From Bigelowiella natans CCMP2755 (taxonomy: Eukaryota > Protista > Cercozoa), in contig ADNK01000694.1 of the NCBI GenBank assembly GCA_000320545.1, positions 33,765 through 97,764 of the forward strand: a stretch of DNA of 64,000 bases, given 5' to 3'. The position numbers were made by a program, and so were the translations under genes. How positions within the stretch are numbered: position 1 is the first letter of the stretch; every line of letters begins with the position of its first letter. Below the pieces are notes generated by a model that saw only the letters and a list, made by a program, of their open reading frames with translations, was not told the origin of the DNA and did not search any database. This document shows, piece by piece, positions 2,231-62,385 of this stretch.

Positions 2231-2262
<32 letters not shown>

Positions 2263-2847
2263 TTGTTGTTGTTGTCGGATGACGATGGTTGTAATATCTA
2301 AGCATCAAATGGCATAATCACCAAACCAGCCATAACTACAACTGGGTATTGATGATGGTGAGAAGGAGGGGGGGGAATGTTGTGATGTTGTGATCACAAA
2401 GATGATGATAACAATGGTGATAATAAGTGGTTGGTGATGACAATAATAGCAGCCAATTGAAATCGATCAAAAGGAAGAGGAGATTCGAATTGGTGGTTAT
2501 AATTATATACGTTGACATACATGCCATAACAATACAAAACCACATGTATAGTAGTAGTAGTAGTAGTAGTAGTAGTATCCACAACAACTTACAAGTACTA
2601 TGCCACCTATTATCATTATTATTATTTATTTTTATTATTTATTATTGGCGACTACGTAATTCCTTTTCCCACATAAGAGTATGGCATGCTGCTGTTGCGG
2701 CACGACCGAATTCGAACATCATCGCTACTATTTAGCATCATCTTCTTCTTGTGTATGTATGTGTGTACATGTAGTTAATCGTTTATCGATCGAGTCAACA
2801 GTGTCATATTTTGATAATTCATCCCTCTATTTTGTCATTAGTATACT

Positions 2848-2894
<47 letters not shown>

Positions 2895-3013
2895 TTCTCT
2901 GGTTCTGATACCACACCTGAGTCTGATATATAAACATACATTCATATATGTATTTATATGATGTAACATTGTCACTAGTAATAACTCGTGCTGCTCCCTT
3001 CCTCCCTCTAATG

Positions 3014-3050
<37 letters not shown>

Positions 3051-3456
3051 GCGGCTGCTACTACAGAAAACATCCGAGAAATTTGTCCCCATTTCTCTGT
3101 TGATTACGCCTATAAGGTAGTAGTAGTAGTGGTGGTGGTGGTGGTGGTGACTACTCAAAGGTGTATATTCGCACCACTATCTTCTTTTTACGAAAATTCA
3201 ACGTACCCCAACGATGAAGTGATGAAACTGGGTTAGATTGAATTGCAATCGTAGTTCTCAACAACTGAAGGATCAAGATAAAAAGCAGCATTATTGTGAA
3301 TTTCTTTCTTTCAATGAGTCATTTATTCCCACTTGCATCTCTCTTTTGGGGGTCCTTCTCACTTCGTTTGTTCGTGATCATCATCTTGTGTGTATTAAAA
3401 GTTACTTGAAGCTCATCGTTGGGATGGCAGTGCTGCTGTTTCAGCTTATTACTCCG

Positions 3457-3487
<31 letters not shown>

Positions 3488-3804
3488 AAGTTAGTCAGTG
3501 ATAACACAACACGTAAGAAGTATTACTAGAGTCACCAGTGTTGTCATACAACGAATCACTCGGCATTATTCTTTATCTCACAAAATGGAGCAGTTTCTAC
3601 ACATTGAGCAGCGTTTAGGATAGCCTCGGTTCTAACCCCATATTATGATCGTCATTATCATCTTATTCAACATCAAATCCCCCCCTTAAAGAATCCATTC
3701 CTGAAATACTCAAGGGTGTTGATCCAGGAACCTATGTGCGGTAATTGATTATGACGAAGATGTCTCCATCATAGTATTAGATGACGACGACAACAATGGA
3801 CGAC

Positions 3805-3837
<33 letters not shown>

Positions 3838-4137
3838 TACTAATTCTGATGTATTTAAATAAATTATTTCGTTTAATCCTGGTTGTCTTCTTCTCAGAGC
3901 AAAGTCAAAAGGGAATCAAAAGCAGTCTTCGAAAGAAGAGGTGCGTGTCTAATAAATGATAGAGGGGATGCGCTAACTCCATTACAGTTTTAATTGGCAC
4001 TCCACGCCCCTAACAAACACAATCATCCTAATTGTGCTTGTAAGTAATCGCCAACCATATAGGTAGAAGGAAAATTAAGACACAAAAAGAAGAAGGAAGA
4101 AGATGATGAGCATATCGATGGTCAGGAACTGCTCTAG
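1..4137 (+). CDS. 3' part of a multi-exon gene of unknown function (starts left of the window)
   Basis: Chain of short AG|exon|GT blocks between microsatellite introns, e.g. IAIPSTYIHNPDDFLQPPPSQFGDMMQRSG (~1713), ENIREICPHFSVDYAYK (~3068), AHRWDGSAAVSAYYS (~3413), and a last exon VEGKLRHKKKKEEDDEHIDGQELL* ending at TAG 4135-4137. No recognised domain. Confidence 0.5.
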
Positions 4138-4139
4138 AT

Positions 4140-5280
4140 GTAGCACTCATCATCATGATACATAACTGACACATATCCAATGCATGTGGATATTTATCAG
4201 CGAAGCGTGTCGCTTACATTATGTGGTACGATACGATGCATGCAAGCTAGCATTGTACGAGTGTACATGCAGTAGGCGCGTATATATGCATGCGCGGTAA
4301 CTAATGTGCACAGCATTGCATTGGTCCATCTAGCAAGCTATGTGAGTACATCTAGACATCTAGACATGTACGTTCCTAGCTCAAGACCTGCAGAAGACTG
4401 ACAGCAACTATGTTGTCAACAAAACTCCTGTCTCGCTGCATGCGTCATGTAGCGTGCAATGCTCATGTAGTAGCTCTAGAGCTGCACAGTGCATGTAGCT
4501 GCAGATAGTGCCACGTCTAGATGTGTGCATCTTGAACATGTCTGATGTCTGTTGCGCATGCAAGCTAGCAAGGCTAGAAGGACGGAGTTTGCCTGCTAGC
4601 TAGCCTGCCATATGCGCTCATCCAGCTAGCTGGTTATTCTCTTATCAACCTTCACCCAACTAGCCAAGAGCATTGGGCAGCATGCTAGCTACTAGTCATT
4701 GGCTAGCTAGCAGCATGGCAGCATGGCAGCATGGCCTGCCCATGCTGTCATGCACGCAACGACGGCTAGCTACATCTAGCCATCCTGCGCAAGTTTTGAA
4801 CGATGGATGGCACAATCATTGACGACATGCACCATGCATCTAGACAGGCATCTAATGCAAGCACAGCAGATGCGCATGTGCATTGCAAAACTTGCAACGA
4901 ACCATCCGCGCTCAGAAATTCAATCCACGTGCATGCATGCCATTCATGTACGTGCTGGCATGCTTGTGTCTCATGAACGCTACACATCGATCTTGTCAGA
5001 TTGCGACGTTGACCCTCCATGGCAATGGCAACAGTGACCATGTCCATTTCTTGTCGTCCTCACTTTGAGATATGAACTAAAGTGGAAATTCAGCTTTAGA
5101 CGACCCGCGTTGATCTTCACTTGTGCAACTCAAATACTTGTGTTGTTGCGGCAACACTTCCTGAAGAGGGGATCCACACCCCACGGGTTCACGTACAGCA
5201 CAGCACAGCATCGTATGTGTTAGTAAGGGATATGTACATGTAAACTGTGAAGTGCCCCCGACTAAAAAGAAAAGCAACAG
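4140..5280. mobile_element. Degraded repeat relic, partly TpA-depleted with many surviving CTAG
   Basis: No microsatellites; dense TGCA/CATG/GCATGC; remaining TA mostly in GCTAGC/TCTAGA; lies between two convergent gene ends. Confidence 0.55.
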
Positions 5281-22302: not shown

Positions 22303-22448
22303 CACGCTGAGAATATACTGTGTAACAAGCCGATGTAAATGAAAAGGAAAACATCGAAATCAAATATCAAACTGTACATCCTTGACCGCTGTGCTGCAAA
22401 AGCGAAAAAAAGAGATGATCTATTGAGCAACAATGACAAGCGCAATGC

Positions 22449-22720
22449 GAGACGGATGTAATGAGTATGTTAATTTTTTTCAATTGTCATCCTAATGAGC
22501 TTTGCAATGTGTAAAGACATATATATATATATATATATGTACATATATATACGATGTATGTGTATTTACATGCATGAGACGGATGTAAAGAAGTGATTTA
22601 TAGATTAAATCTTTTCAATAGTCATCCTACAATGTAGCAATGCAAAGCAGCGGCTACAGCGCTCATGTTGTGTCTGTTGGTCTCTGTCATCATCATGTGC
22701 TTCATGAATTTAAAAGAAGA
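22449..22720 (-). mobile_element. Two additional short 3'-end fragments of the same LINE, in tandem
   Basis: GAGACGGATGT...TTTTCAAT.GTCATCCT at 22449 and 22575 (the latter continues with GCAGCGGCTACAGCGCT), matching the LINE end at 22775; separated by (TA)n-derived tracts. Confidence 0.8.
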
Positions 22721-22774
22721 TGGAAGCATCTATGTCCTAGGTACATGCATGTGCACAGCGTGTGCACACATGCA

Positions 22775-24290
22775 TGAGACGGATGTGATGAAGAATCAAA
22801 TTTTTTCAATGGTCATCCTGATGTAGCTGTGCAATGCAGCGGCTACAGCGCTAATGTTGCATCTGTTGGTTTCTGCCACCACGTGCTTCATGCATTTGAA
22901 AGCGTCCTCATGCGACCGATGTTGCCGCGCACTGCGCGCAGCAGTTCTGGAGTCCTTTTCAGCCTTTGTCAGCCGGTTCGTGTCGTCGTTGCGATTCATG
23001 ATCGCGCGCATTTGATTGCGCAATCTGATTTGTTCTCGACTGTGTGTTGGACATTGCAGGAGATGATCCATGTCCTTCAGGATGCCACATGCATCGCACG
23101 CAGCATCTTTCTCCGTGCATTGTCCACGTGAGAACATGAATTTTCCAAGATTGCCGACACCACAGATGGCGCGCATCCATGATGTAGCAACACTTGGAAG
23201 TTTCAGTTTGATGCCGGTGATCGAAGATGACGGGAGGAATCCAAGATTCTTGAGATGCACAGCGCGCAATGAATCATTGGACCATTCCTCTTCGAATTCG
23301 TTGAAAGCACAGGATTTCATCACCTTGTGATGTTTTTTCAGTTCTTTTTTCAGTCTTTTTTCAGCGCCTCTGTTGTCGCCAAAACGGTGGGCAATTCGTC
23401 GTCTAACAAATCGTCAGTGATCGATTTGAGCCGACGAAACAAGGATGCTTTGTTCCACGCATTTGTGGGCACATCAATCCACGATGTGCCATCCAACATT
23501 TTTCGATTCTCAATGATGAAGCCATGACTGCTCCAATCATTTGTTCCCTCATGGATTTGAGGACCGCTGCCTGTGTCGATCCATGCGTCAGTGCGCAACC
23601 ATGATTTGGCACACTGCACTTCAGTTTGACATCGGGGTGGCAACGTGCCAGTGAGGACGTGGGGGACGTCGTTGGAGATGGATCCAGGTGATCCCAATGC
23701 ACGTTTCAGGGTTTGGGATTCCATGGAATCCATCTGTTTCATTCGCATGTTTCTTCGTGATCTCCACATTGGAGCAGCGCATCTGCTGGATGCAAGGAAC
23801 CATGATTTGCAAAATTTCAGTCTGACATTCAGCGGTGCAAGGTGTCTGGAATGACACAACCTTGACAAAAACCTTCGCTTCTTTTGCAATCTCAGGTGAG
23901 AAGCAAGAGCATGTTTTTCAAAGGTCAATTTGTTGTCGAAGATTGGTCCGAGACATCTGCCGCTGTCGACTCTTTTCACTTTGCCTTGGAGATTGAGAGA
24001 GATGTTCCAGGAGGTTTGGTGTCGGTGGGCTTCATTTCTTTTGTCAATTGTGAGGTGCCCGCTCTTGTCCCCATTGAATCGCATCCGCCATTTCATGCAC
24101 CAGTCCGTCATTTGGTTTAGGTCGGCCTGGATGTCATCTTGCATTTTCCCCCATCGGTTTGGCGAAAACAATTTGTAGGGGGTGACGTCGTCACAGTGCA
24201 TTTGGAAATCTGTGTTGGTAATTTGTTCGTAAACATCGCAATGGGTTGTGAAAACATGTGCATACACATGCACATACACCCGTCTCACAC
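22775..24290 (-). mobile_element. 5'-truncated non-LTR retrotransposon (LINE): RT C-terminal part plus CCHC zinc finger; frameshifted and hypermutated
   Basis: FQMHCDD (YxDD position), IQADLNQMTDWCMKWRMRFNGDKS, RCLGPIFDNKLTFEKH, RLKFCKS, RCAAPMW; C-terminal CDACG...DHLLQCP; frame change near 23340; stop at 22796 followed by a short 3' UTR and a degraded (TA)n tract. Confidence 0.88.
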
Positions 24291-24687
24291 ATGACATGCA
24301 CACAAATGCACACATATTACTTGACTAGCTGAGTGCATAATGCCCGCTAGAAGCAGCTACAACCGTCATTACATGCTATTGCATGCTTTTGGTGCCACAG
24401 AGTAATGTAAAGTCAATAGAATTTGTTACGCCGAGTATTGGTGGCGGAACATAGCCTAGATTACCAACCACGGAGGCTACATCAATAAAATAGACACAAC
24501 ATATATAGTGCGCTGTAGCAAGCTCTGCCACTGATGCATCCTAACAATATTTTGAGTGTTGTTCTGTAAAAAATTGACTTAGCGAAGTAATCATTTCTCT
24601 AAATGACTAAGTAGCGATTGGACATAATGGTAATATAATTTGCAAACTATGGCTGTGAAAATACCAATTGTTCTTGGACACGATTTT

Positions 24688-56849: not shown

Positions 56850-59660
56850 CGGAGAATAGGGAAATTTTCCTGTCAAAACGTTGTCGCTCAGTATGAAATG
56901 TCACCCAAACTTAAAGATGTCATCCGTTGGGTGATTCTCCCCATGTTTGGTGAAGAGACATGCAAATGACACGCTTTGGCTGAGCAAGGGTGAGACCAGA
57001 TCGGCGGCCACGAGGATCAAGTTCAGTCATTCACTCTTGCAACGTTCATTGAAATGCAGTTTGTCATCATGTTTTGTTCATTGTTCACACTGTTGAGTGC
57101 AATGCGGCAATCAGCGCACATTCAGTGATGCAGAGTTCGTGCAACCTCACGTGCAACCACTCACCTTCTTTTTTTTCCTTCTTCGCTTCTTCTTCGTTCA
57201 CTTGTTCAGGTGCAGAAGTGGCGGCGGCGGACGACGTGCCAGTCGAGGAACGTCAAGTCTTCTTGCTTGACTCTCGCTGAAAAGGCGCTGGAGTGAAAAC
57301 ATGCACCTCGTGTTTCGGTTTCTTCGTGGTGAGATCACAGCTCACGTGTTCACTGACACGATGAACACAGAGTTGGGCACCCCTCAGGAGGGCATGAAAC
57401 AGGTGGAAAACGACTTGCAAGCAGCTCCATTTGACGTGACCAAGTTCAAGTTCAGGGCGTGTGAGGTGAAAGACAGATCAGCAGCAGGAGGATTCACTTG
57501 GGCCACTCCGAAAATGGCGAAGACACTGCAGATTTCAGAGGAATGGGACTTCGAACATCTGCACAAAGTCAATCCTGGGAGAGGCGAGCCATTGCAAAAA
57601 TCGGCAAGAAGCTGGGTCAAAATGCATCGCAGACTGATGGTTTGGCCAGGAGACGGGCCAGAACTGACTTGTGAAGAAGTGTGGAAGGAGCATTCGGATT
57701 TCATGGAGGCGCTCATGCTGGCATGGAAGAAGGGTGAGAACAACGAACAACATGCGTGCACGTGTGCAGTGTGAGTGTGCGTGTGTGTGCAATTCGTGAC
57801 AATCATCACATTGAAAATTTTCATTTGTGTGTGCTTGTTGGAAGTGGAGAACCAGGTGTGGATGACGTGGAGATGAAGGGTCTTCCTGGCACGATTGTGA
57901 CTCCTCACGCTCACACTTGGGTCAATCACATGGGGGAGCAATGTGGAAGAAGTGCTGCTCATTCCAACCATTTTTTGGAGAATCCTGGACCAATTGAATC
58001 AAACGTGGATTCTGATGACTCATCTGATGAGGTTCAGGAGCTGACAGCTTGCTCAGGCGGGCTGAAATTTGCTGGGACAGACGCACTTGAACGGAAAAAT
58101 TTGGCGTTTTTTCACAGTCATTTTCAGACATTGGCAGGCGAAGTGATCATGTCACACCAGACGCCAGGTTCCAAGAGCTCAGGAATCTCATCAATCCACA
58201 CAAAAGTGGCAGCTCCAGCAGACACAAACATTGGTGCGAGTGGTGCGGCAAAGGACACGTTGGAAAAAAAATTTTGCGCAGCGCACACATGGAACACGCA
58301 TCAGCTCGAATGTGCCCAAGCACCGCAGACAGCATTGCAATTGTCACGCATGATGCACTTCAATTGCATTTTGGCAACGTCACATGTGACACCTGATGGC
58401 TTCAATGTCAATGCATTGCAATGATTTTTCCATGCATGTCCCATGCGCTTGCTGCTGGTGCAGGCTCATTTTGACGTGCGTCGACGTGTCCTTCTTTGTT
58501 GGCTGAGCAACACGGCACGCAGACTGACAGGATTTCATTGTTTCCACCTGACTTCAGGGGTTCGCGCATGTGTTTGTTGTGGTTGATGCTGATTGACAGC
58601 ACGCGTTGAACTTGCATCCGAACACATGCTTGCAATGGACACAGCAACGTGCACTGTGCACATTCGTGCATTGCATCACACGTCCATCACGTGCAAGTTG
58701 GGGGCAGGCAAGCCAGCGCATCGTAACACAGCTGGCGACGTGCGCTGGACGCGTGCTGATCGCATCGACGGCATGCTGGCATGTGACGTCTGCTCAGTCC
58801 AGAACAATGACGCCGACCGAGCAACAATGTGCAATGAGCGTGCTGCGTGTGCTGCACAGTGTGAGGCTGCTTGCCCAGATCAGCACAAAGTTGGGCGGGA
58901 AAAAATGAATGTCGAGATTCTGGATGCCGCGATGAATTGTTGATGAATCTGCACGTGCGCTTGGCTGCAATGCTAGAATGGCACGCGCTCCAAGTCTGCA
59001 TCGCACAGGGAGCCCTGTCAATGGCACTCGAAACGTCATCAGTTCGAACAACGAGCTTGAGGTGGAAAGTCGAGACGGACTAGCTAGCTAGCCCCCGGCT
59101 AGCCGGCCTGTCTCGACTCACTTTTTCAGTCGTGCGTCATCTCAATGTTGCGATGACGCAGCGAGTAGTGTTGTGGACCTTCGATGCAAGCTCACATTTC
59201 ATTGTCTAGTTGTGTCAACACGCATGCAAGCAATGCAACTCCGCCACAATGCACAGCATGCACATGGCTTCTGGAACAATTCCTGGCTTTCGTGCAATTT
59301 TGTTTTTTGTTTCCCAAAAATTGTCATCATCTACATGCTGATGCTTGGCAACTAGCTAGCCGATAGCCGTGAGCGCACGTGTGATCGTTGATCGACATTG
59401 GAATCGAAGAGTGCCAAAACACATGCAAGCAATGACATGGGAGGCATTTCAATTTGTGTTCATTTCACATGATGCAGCGCGTGCACATGCAGCATGTACA
59501 CGCATGCACGCATGCACATGACACGTGTGATTGATTTGCATGGCATGCATGGCTAGCTATAGCTGTGCGAGCTAGCGAGCATGCACGCATCGCCCTGCCT
59601 ACATTAGATTAAAACATCAACCACACAATGCTACATCGGTGCATGTAAATGCGTTGCAGC
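56850..59660. pseudogene. TpA-free hypermutated element or pseudogene of unknown identity (plus-strand coding remnants with intron-like segments)
   Basis: No TA dinucleotide between 56914 and 58723 (manual scan). ORFs 57301-57774 and 57756-58424 contain no Tyr. Polypyrimidine+CAG at ~57160-57209; in-frame TGA stops. Confidence 0.6.
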
Positions 59661-62130: not shown

Positions 62131-62254
62131 GATTCAAGAACTCAGTATCCTGCGTTCGATTTTCTGATTCTCATGTTTGCTGAAAAAAGACACAATGATT
62201 TGATGCCGGAATTTAACGATTATGGTATCAATCGTTCGCACGTGCTATCACATG

Positions 62255-62385
62255 TGAGATGGATGTAATGAAGTGATTAAATCTTTTCAATGATCATCCT
62301 AATGTAGCTATGCAAAGCAGCGGCTACAGCGCTTAGGTTGCATCTTATTAGTCTCGTCTAACATGTGTTCAATGCATTTAGCAAG
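62255..62385 (-). mobile_element. Fourth 3'-end fragment of the LINE family (less mutated copy)
   Basis: TGAGATGGATGTAATGAAGTGATTAAATCTTTTCAATGATCATCCTAATGTAGCTATGCAAAGCAGCGGCTACAGCGCT aligns with the copies at 22575 and 22775. Confidence 0.85.

Follow-up and report, generated by a model that had tools for sequence, protein, structure and literature searches.

We find that four 3' ends from a single LINE superfamily within a 64,000-nucleotide stretch of the Bigelowiella natans genome (hereafter the window) differ in their content of the dinucleotide TpA, and we consider it likely that they came to differ through a TpA-specific hypermutation of DNA already described in this organism, with the shortness of a copy not being the cause. 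The four sequences would be the tails of one old, 5'-truncated family-A copy and of three fragments (64–142 nt) from sister subfamilies, and the differences of TA against TG or CA among them would stem from A:T>G:C changes at TpA, made in DNA, both in the source lineage of family A and in individual copies. The mutator behind these differences is already known, from a study published in 2026 (Mettrop et al., bioRxiv 10.64898/2026.01.13.699255). In that mutation-accumulation experiment, new TpA>TpG/CpA mutations arose in vegetatively propagated lines of B. natans at a rate of ~6e-7 per site per generation, though in some lines only, and their targets were a single-copy 186-kb giant-virus (NCLDV) insert and a virophage insert. 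The same authors found an excess of reverse transcriptase and endonuclease-reverse-transcriptase domains among TpA-depleted coding sequences, and proposed an ADAT2-like adenine deaminase as the enzyme.

The window is eukaryotic and microsatellite-rich, with a G+C content of about 40%, and a repeat search over its whole length returned microsatellite families only. A reading of the sequence alone (the sequence-only reading) had reported four copies of a LINE 3' end, and we located all four, from 64 nt to 1.48 kb in length and all on the minus strand in LINE sense (Table 1). The short copies are 74–85% identical to the long one and belong to other subfamilies. Immediately downstream of the long copy, two of them are arranged head to tail, with (TA)n-like tracts separating them, and junctions of TA/CA/TG type like the tract in Table 1 adjoin the LINE 3' end at other loci. 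Tail fragments also cluster near longer copies elsewhere, head-to-tail or inverted (at the ends of L031, at L019, L020, L027 and L033, and in the window at 22446–24254), and in one contig a LINE 5' end is joined to a 3' end with 12 nt in between; this clustering suggests insertion beside existing tails or into microsatellites of TA/CA type. At another place in the window, a 1.8-kb segment (56914–58723) has zero TpA; it is a low-copy repeat with five related genomic places at 84–92% identity.

Table 1. LINE tail copies in the window and the tract lying between two of them
Feature	Position	Strand	Description
LINE 3'-terminal fragment, subfamily other than A	22446–22512	minus	64 nt; TA at sites 1, 2 and 4; TpA o/e 0.61
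(TA)n-rich tract, alternating purines/pyrimidines	22513–22574	no strand	between two tail fragments; junction or target microsatellite
LINE 3'-terminal fragment	22575–22716	minus	142 nt; ~77% identity to family A; 9 TpA, 6 in susceptible contexts
LINE family A copy, 5'-truncated, hypermutated	22775–24254	minus	1.48 kb; C-terminal part of ORF2 and 3' UTR
LINE 3'-terminal fragment	62253–62379	minus	127 nt; 10–12 TpA; best genomic relatives 85–92% identical

The class of the element was assigned from a full-length relative, L031:445–5408, not from the two ORF pieces of the window copy, for which the sole Pfam match was a sub-threshold zinc finger. The relative is 4,964 nt long and carries an ORF1 of 480 aa and an intact ORF2 of 1,164 aa with matches to Exo_endo_phos_2 (9.6e-18) and RVT_1 (7.2e-18). 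By these predicted endonuclease and reverse transcriptase domains, and by the existence of 5'-truncated copies with a common 3' end, the element is a LINE (non-LTR retrotransposon) with an apurinic-type endonuclease. From read depth in independent DNA runs we estimate about 18 near-identical full-length copies, with a depth roughly a hundred times higher across the final ~165 nt. In the assembly, the number of family-A copies that reach a given position from the 3' end falls from 134 at position 61 to 88 at 113, 68 at 238, 45 at 432 and 34 at 626, so very short tail fragments are the commonest form of the element; Logan contigs merge identical copies, and their shares are not copy counts. RNA reads are confined to two parts of the LINE, its 5' ~800 nt and its final ~165 nt. 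They include a spliced joint at L031:4904–5179 (the 5' region, on the ORF1 side) that skips 274 nt with GT..AG borders on the plus strand, antisense to the LINE, and an antisense transcript of this kind could matter for recognition of the element.

Six TA differences had been reported between the short copies and the long one, and each of them is seen in at least one short copy. At site 1, GTAATG (fragments at 62255 and 22449) or GTAAAG (22575) stands against GTGATG in the long copy, and at site 2, TTAAAT or TTAATT in the short copies stands against TCAAAT. Site 3 reads CAATAGTC in the fragment at 22575 alone, with CAATGATC at 62255 and CAATTGTC at 22449, and site 4 reads CCTAATG at both 62255 and 22449 and CCTACAATG at 22575. 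The remaining two are each found once, as GCTATGC at site 5 (62255) and TTTAAAAG at site 6 (22575). When the three short copies were aligned pairwise with the long one, TA in the short copy faced TG or CA in the long copy at 3 + 4 + 8 = 15 sites and the reverse occurred at none, although the long copy has just 3 TA in the aligned stretch and so leaves little room for reverse differences; the same alignments hold 25 other transitions and 17 transversions. The description of the short copies as TA-rich and the 1.5-kb copy as depleted is borne out by TpA o/e values of 0.61–0.91 against 0.09, with 0.88 for the window as a whole.

The polarity TA>TG/CA that was read from these differences stands at sites 1, 2 and 4, where TA, TG and CA are all found among copies, and site 6 probably follows it; the A seen at sites 3 and 5 may be the derived state. 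Sites 3, 5 and 6 are G in 30 of 30 long family-A copies and are thus differences between subfamilies; site 6 is G in 84 of 88 copies genome-wide, and site 3 is G also in most short fragments. The idea that four copies give a direct read-out of the mutation therefore keeps its arrow at sites 1, 2 and 4, and probably 6, but holds only in part, since the copies come from different subfamilies, G is fixed within family A at three of the six sites and the load of the long copy is partly inherited. About 20 young copies, near-identical and unmutated, share with the long copy the TG/CA state of sites 1 and 2, and in a census of family-A tails (100 listed of 142 matches) the two sites together read TA/TA in 46, TG/CA in 27, mostly untouched young copies, and other combinations in 27. 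The long copy makes the same choice between TG and CA as its sister L027 at 12 of 13 body sites, and L027 is truncated elsewhere, so part of the load came from an already mutated source. Site 2 is CA in the window copy and TG in L027, which places that change after their split. The source lineage holds 6 TpA in its 3' 750 nt, and some 20 dinucleotide positions of the 3' 740 nt are split between TG and CA among copies.

The direction and spectrum of the process are readable from an alignment of 30 genomic copies over 1.47 kb, with the majority states of young copies as reference and the natural copy L031:445–5408 as reference at full length. The aligned stretch has 43 TpA in a group of 17 young copies with a mutual identity of about 99%, and 3–12 in the other 13 copies; in the long window copy, 33 of the 43 reference TpA have become TG or CA, with a non-TA divergence of 2.2%. 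Changes of TA type outnumber all others by 36 to 4 in L009 and 39 to 7 in L012, both counted from the young majority, and by 69 to 8 in C1193 and 59 to 8 in L035. Across the hypermutated copies 871 of 954 reference TA are changed, into 452 CA, 365 TG, 12 CG and 42 other dinucleotides (window plus strand). At 60 of 68 sites the changed copies are divided between TG and CA, which makes TA the ancestral state, and pairwise concordance of the outcomes is 58.7%, close to the ~50% expected if they were independent. TG and CA are interleaved in 12 of 12 copies at about 45:55, with no strand runs (runs test, Stouffer Z −1.0). A census of reads counted A>G at 22–33 places and T>C at 31–41, against 8–12 for G>A or C>T. 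We also considered CpG decay as the source of TG and CA and rejected it: the CpG o/e of the LINE is 0.91, and CG was not seen at TA-majority sites and is elsewhere a rare double hit.

Neighboring bases matter to the mutator. The fraction of TA kept is 0.77 in CTAC, 0.44 in CTAA and 0.41 in GTAG, and at most 0.10 in the remaining contexts. In subfamily-B copies changed at sites 1 and 2 (for example, G000:C2862:233682 and C2966:6723), the CTAG of the anchor has also become CCAG, so CTAG is spared only relatively. The process is local and sporadic, with a load that is bimodal among copies. C1193 is saturated with changes at positions 751–1500 from the 3' end, with fewer and fewer of them up to 2250 and none at 2251–4250 (0 of 99), and is changed again at 15 of 21 places at its 5' end (4251–4964); another full-length copy has a single 220-nt cluster of changes, and in subfamily B a change at site 1 tends to go with one at site 2 (p=5e-14). 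In run X10, about 30% of the depth at two places in L031 (1360/1361 and 1687/1695) carries variants at TA sites that were not found in X14 and X5, for which contigs were searched and absence is not provable; these may be culture differences or ongoing mutation.

Of the alternatives to this account, the one that survives best is a minimum copy length or repeat homology as in RIP, which the sequence-only reading had suggested: the 1.5-kb copy would have been mutated in place, and fragments of 65–145 nt would lie below the threshold and keep their ancestral TA. We regard it as unlikely. With non-TA divergence as a control for age, TA load among copies of 1–5 kb is predicted by age and not by length. 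Where this divergence is at most 0.3%, 0–4% of TA is lost, with two partial exceptions, and where it is at least 2%, 78–95% is lost in 12 of 12 copies, at lengths of 1.0–3.9 kb. Length is not sufficient for mutation, as there are unmutated copies of 1.1–5 kb and many full-length ones that have stayed untouched; at the short end, a 403-nt copy is mutated and a 53-nt fragment (L020:1198–1250) is changed at both sites. Homology is not required either, as the published hypermutable region is single-copy.

The change at site 2 after the split from L027 would suit mutation of the long copy in place, and the tails do show a contrast between short and long copies: TpA o/e is 0.78 in the 12 short fragments examined against 0.39 in the same 140 nt of old long copies, and sites 1, 2 and 4 still read TA in 29 of 33 short-fragment cases against 9 of 36 in old long copies. 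However, this comparison is confounded by subfamily and region. Subfamily-B copies of 445 and 465 nt keep tail TAs just as those of 115 and 172 nt do, with 8–10 TA in the last ~95 nt and a TpA-poor sequence beyond, so retention of TA belongs to the tail region and the subfamily. Heavily hypermutated long copies of the element also retain TA at sites 1 and 2, as in L002, which has lost 156 of 172 TA yet still has TA at both.

Counts in the fragments themselves point to at most a weak influence of length. In three censuses, which used exact-match patterns that favor young copies (one of them a 33-place degenerate pattern), listed up to 100 matches each and leave in-place changes in short fragments indistinguishable from states inherited from mutated sources, the matches listed showed TA-type changes at positions 70 and 78 of family A in 10 of 53 fragments <135 nt versus 14 of 47 longer ones (p=0.24), changes at sites 1 and 2, with the young TG/CA type excluded, in 12 of 42 short versus 15 of 31 long copies (p=0.09), and changes in subfamily B in 12 of 70 copies <175 nt versus 8 of 24 longer ones (p=0.15). 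Taken together, 17–29% of short and 30–48% of longer copies among the matches listed are changed, a trend of about twofold toward longer copies in all three that is not significant; the same listed matches place changes in 19–29% of fragments <135 nt and in 17% of those <175 nt. The evidence is thus against a sharp length threshold, which is not supported, and a graded effect of length of about twofold is possible.

The process acts on DNA and is confined to the element and about 100 nt of flank. Two segmental duplicates, L027 (C1883) and L028 (C160), carry the same truncated LINE with both flanks and differ almost only by changes of TA type, including six adjacent TG-versus-CA doublets, some of them within 480 nt outside the LINE. 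Of their point differences, 41 of 41 fall in the left 1.4 kb. The identity of the remaining 1.45 kb on the right could be an assembly effect, as the contigs stop ~200–260 nt past the shared stretch. Within 100 nt of the element we counted 2.4 susceptible TA per 100 nt beside hypermutated copies and 5.3 beside unmutated ones (p=2e-7), and more than 100 nt out, the density of susceptible TA was the same beside both.

These findings bear on a second alternative, in which LINE RNA is edited by an ADAR-like enzyme before reverse transcription and new copies are born mutated. ADAR enzymes prefer a 5' T or U. The preference seen here matches theirs, a likeness that Mettrop et al. also note, and the 12 of 13 sites common to the window copy and the differently truncated L027 indicate that mutated sources can be copied. 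However, editing of one RNA strand would give one type of change only, and TG and CA are interleaved in every copy; the differences between the duplicates arose after duplication at the DNA level and reach outside the LINE, with flanks affected; and the new mutations of Mettrop et al. arose in integrated, transcriptionally silent DNA. We therefore hold this route to be very improbable. Least probable of all, and refuted as an account of the whole process, is the reverse polarity, in which G or C is ancestral and short copies gained TA through CpA>TpA as in classical RIP: it draws on sites 3 and 5, where all long copies and the majority of short fragments carry G, so that the A of single window fragments may be derived, and it is contradicted by the mixed outcomes at 60 of 68 sites, which need a TA ancestor and with which the rare CG double hits agree, by young copies 99.9% mutually identical that hold 205 TA while divergent copies are TA-poor, and by the mutation-accumulation experiment of Mettrop et al., which shows the direction directly. 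The mixed outcomes likewise rule out the variant in which the young family gained its TA.

Hypermutation of TpA in DNA would account for the four tails as follows. As the copies show, the mutator turns TA into TG or CA by acting on either strand, with each site independent, and behaves as a switch that leaves a copy nearly untouched or nearly saturated; load follows age because almost every copy is eventually reached. It stays within the element and ~100 nt of flank, largely spares CTAC/GTAG and CTAA/TTAG, and has a weaker effect on the terminal ~95 nt than on the body of the element. That short fragments look TA-rich would then be due to their consisting of the tail region only and to their descent from subfamilies whose sources kept TA there. 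As for the enzyme, an adenine deaminase of the kind proposed in the preprint would fit, with the ADAT2-like Bn78255 as a candidate, and selection for recognition by the reverse transcriptase is possibly why the tail keeps its TAs.

A more tentative extension is that the copies record an arms race, in which a switch-like mutator, aimed at the element to within ~100 nt and reaching every copy in time, is met by a surviving source lineage that has already given up nearly all TpA in the 3' 750 nt of its coding sequence, the most abundant part, and has TpA left in the ~95-nt tail alone. Those 750 nt could then no longer be damaged, and the tail may serve recognition by the element's own reverse transcriptase while the mutator reaches it less well. 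If this were true, the weak, roughly twofold effect of length or dose would reflect guidance by homology, for example through small RNAs. We see this as a possibility on the less likely side.

The LINE changes resemble the TpA hypermutation of Mettrop et al. in being A>G/T>C at TpA only, on both strands, regional and on-or-off. The preprint covers two viral inserts and dinucleotide statistics, and our analysis adds the LINE copies, the flanking bases, the tracts, the spill-over and the question of length. Like RIP of ascomycete fungi, the process is a DNA-level hypermutation at one dinucleotide that inactivates transposons, on both strands and with slight leakage into flanks. RIP, however, makes C:G>T:A changes at CpA that create TpA and stop codons, whereas the LINE process does the opposite, destroying TpA and making no in-frame stops, and RIP requires a duplication of at least ~400 bp, whereas here a single-copy region is targeted and fragments <135 nt are changed. 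RIP is premeiotic and involves a RID-type cytosine methyltransferase; the mutations of Mettrop et al. arose in vegetative propagation. With hypermutation by the deaminases APOBEC3 (on cDNA) and ADAR (on RNA) it has in common clustered transitions, a preference for a neighboring base and retroelements as targets. The deaminases work on a single strand of a replication intermediate, leaving strand-coordinated runs, whereas the strand is here chosen site by site, in integrated DNA and after duplication.

For anyone modeling the mutator, the LINE copies set constraints: a load led by age, copies either nearly untouched or nearly saturated, a spill-over of ~100 nt, strand choice per site and the large sparing of CTAC and CTAA. 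Short copies only seem to be protected, owing to their subfamily and to the tail region, and the analogy with RIP is tempting but wrong. Hypermutated elements can still be copied. By the genetic code, TA>TG/CA cannot make an in-frame stop, and the hypermutated window copy (22796–24315, minus strand) retains ORFs of 175 and 321 aa, fitting the absence of new stops. Mutated copies thus keep long ORFs, which matters for gene annotation, as such copies may be annotated as genes. Overall, a mutator of DNA that erases TpA from foreign and mobile sequences is a rare form of genome defense.
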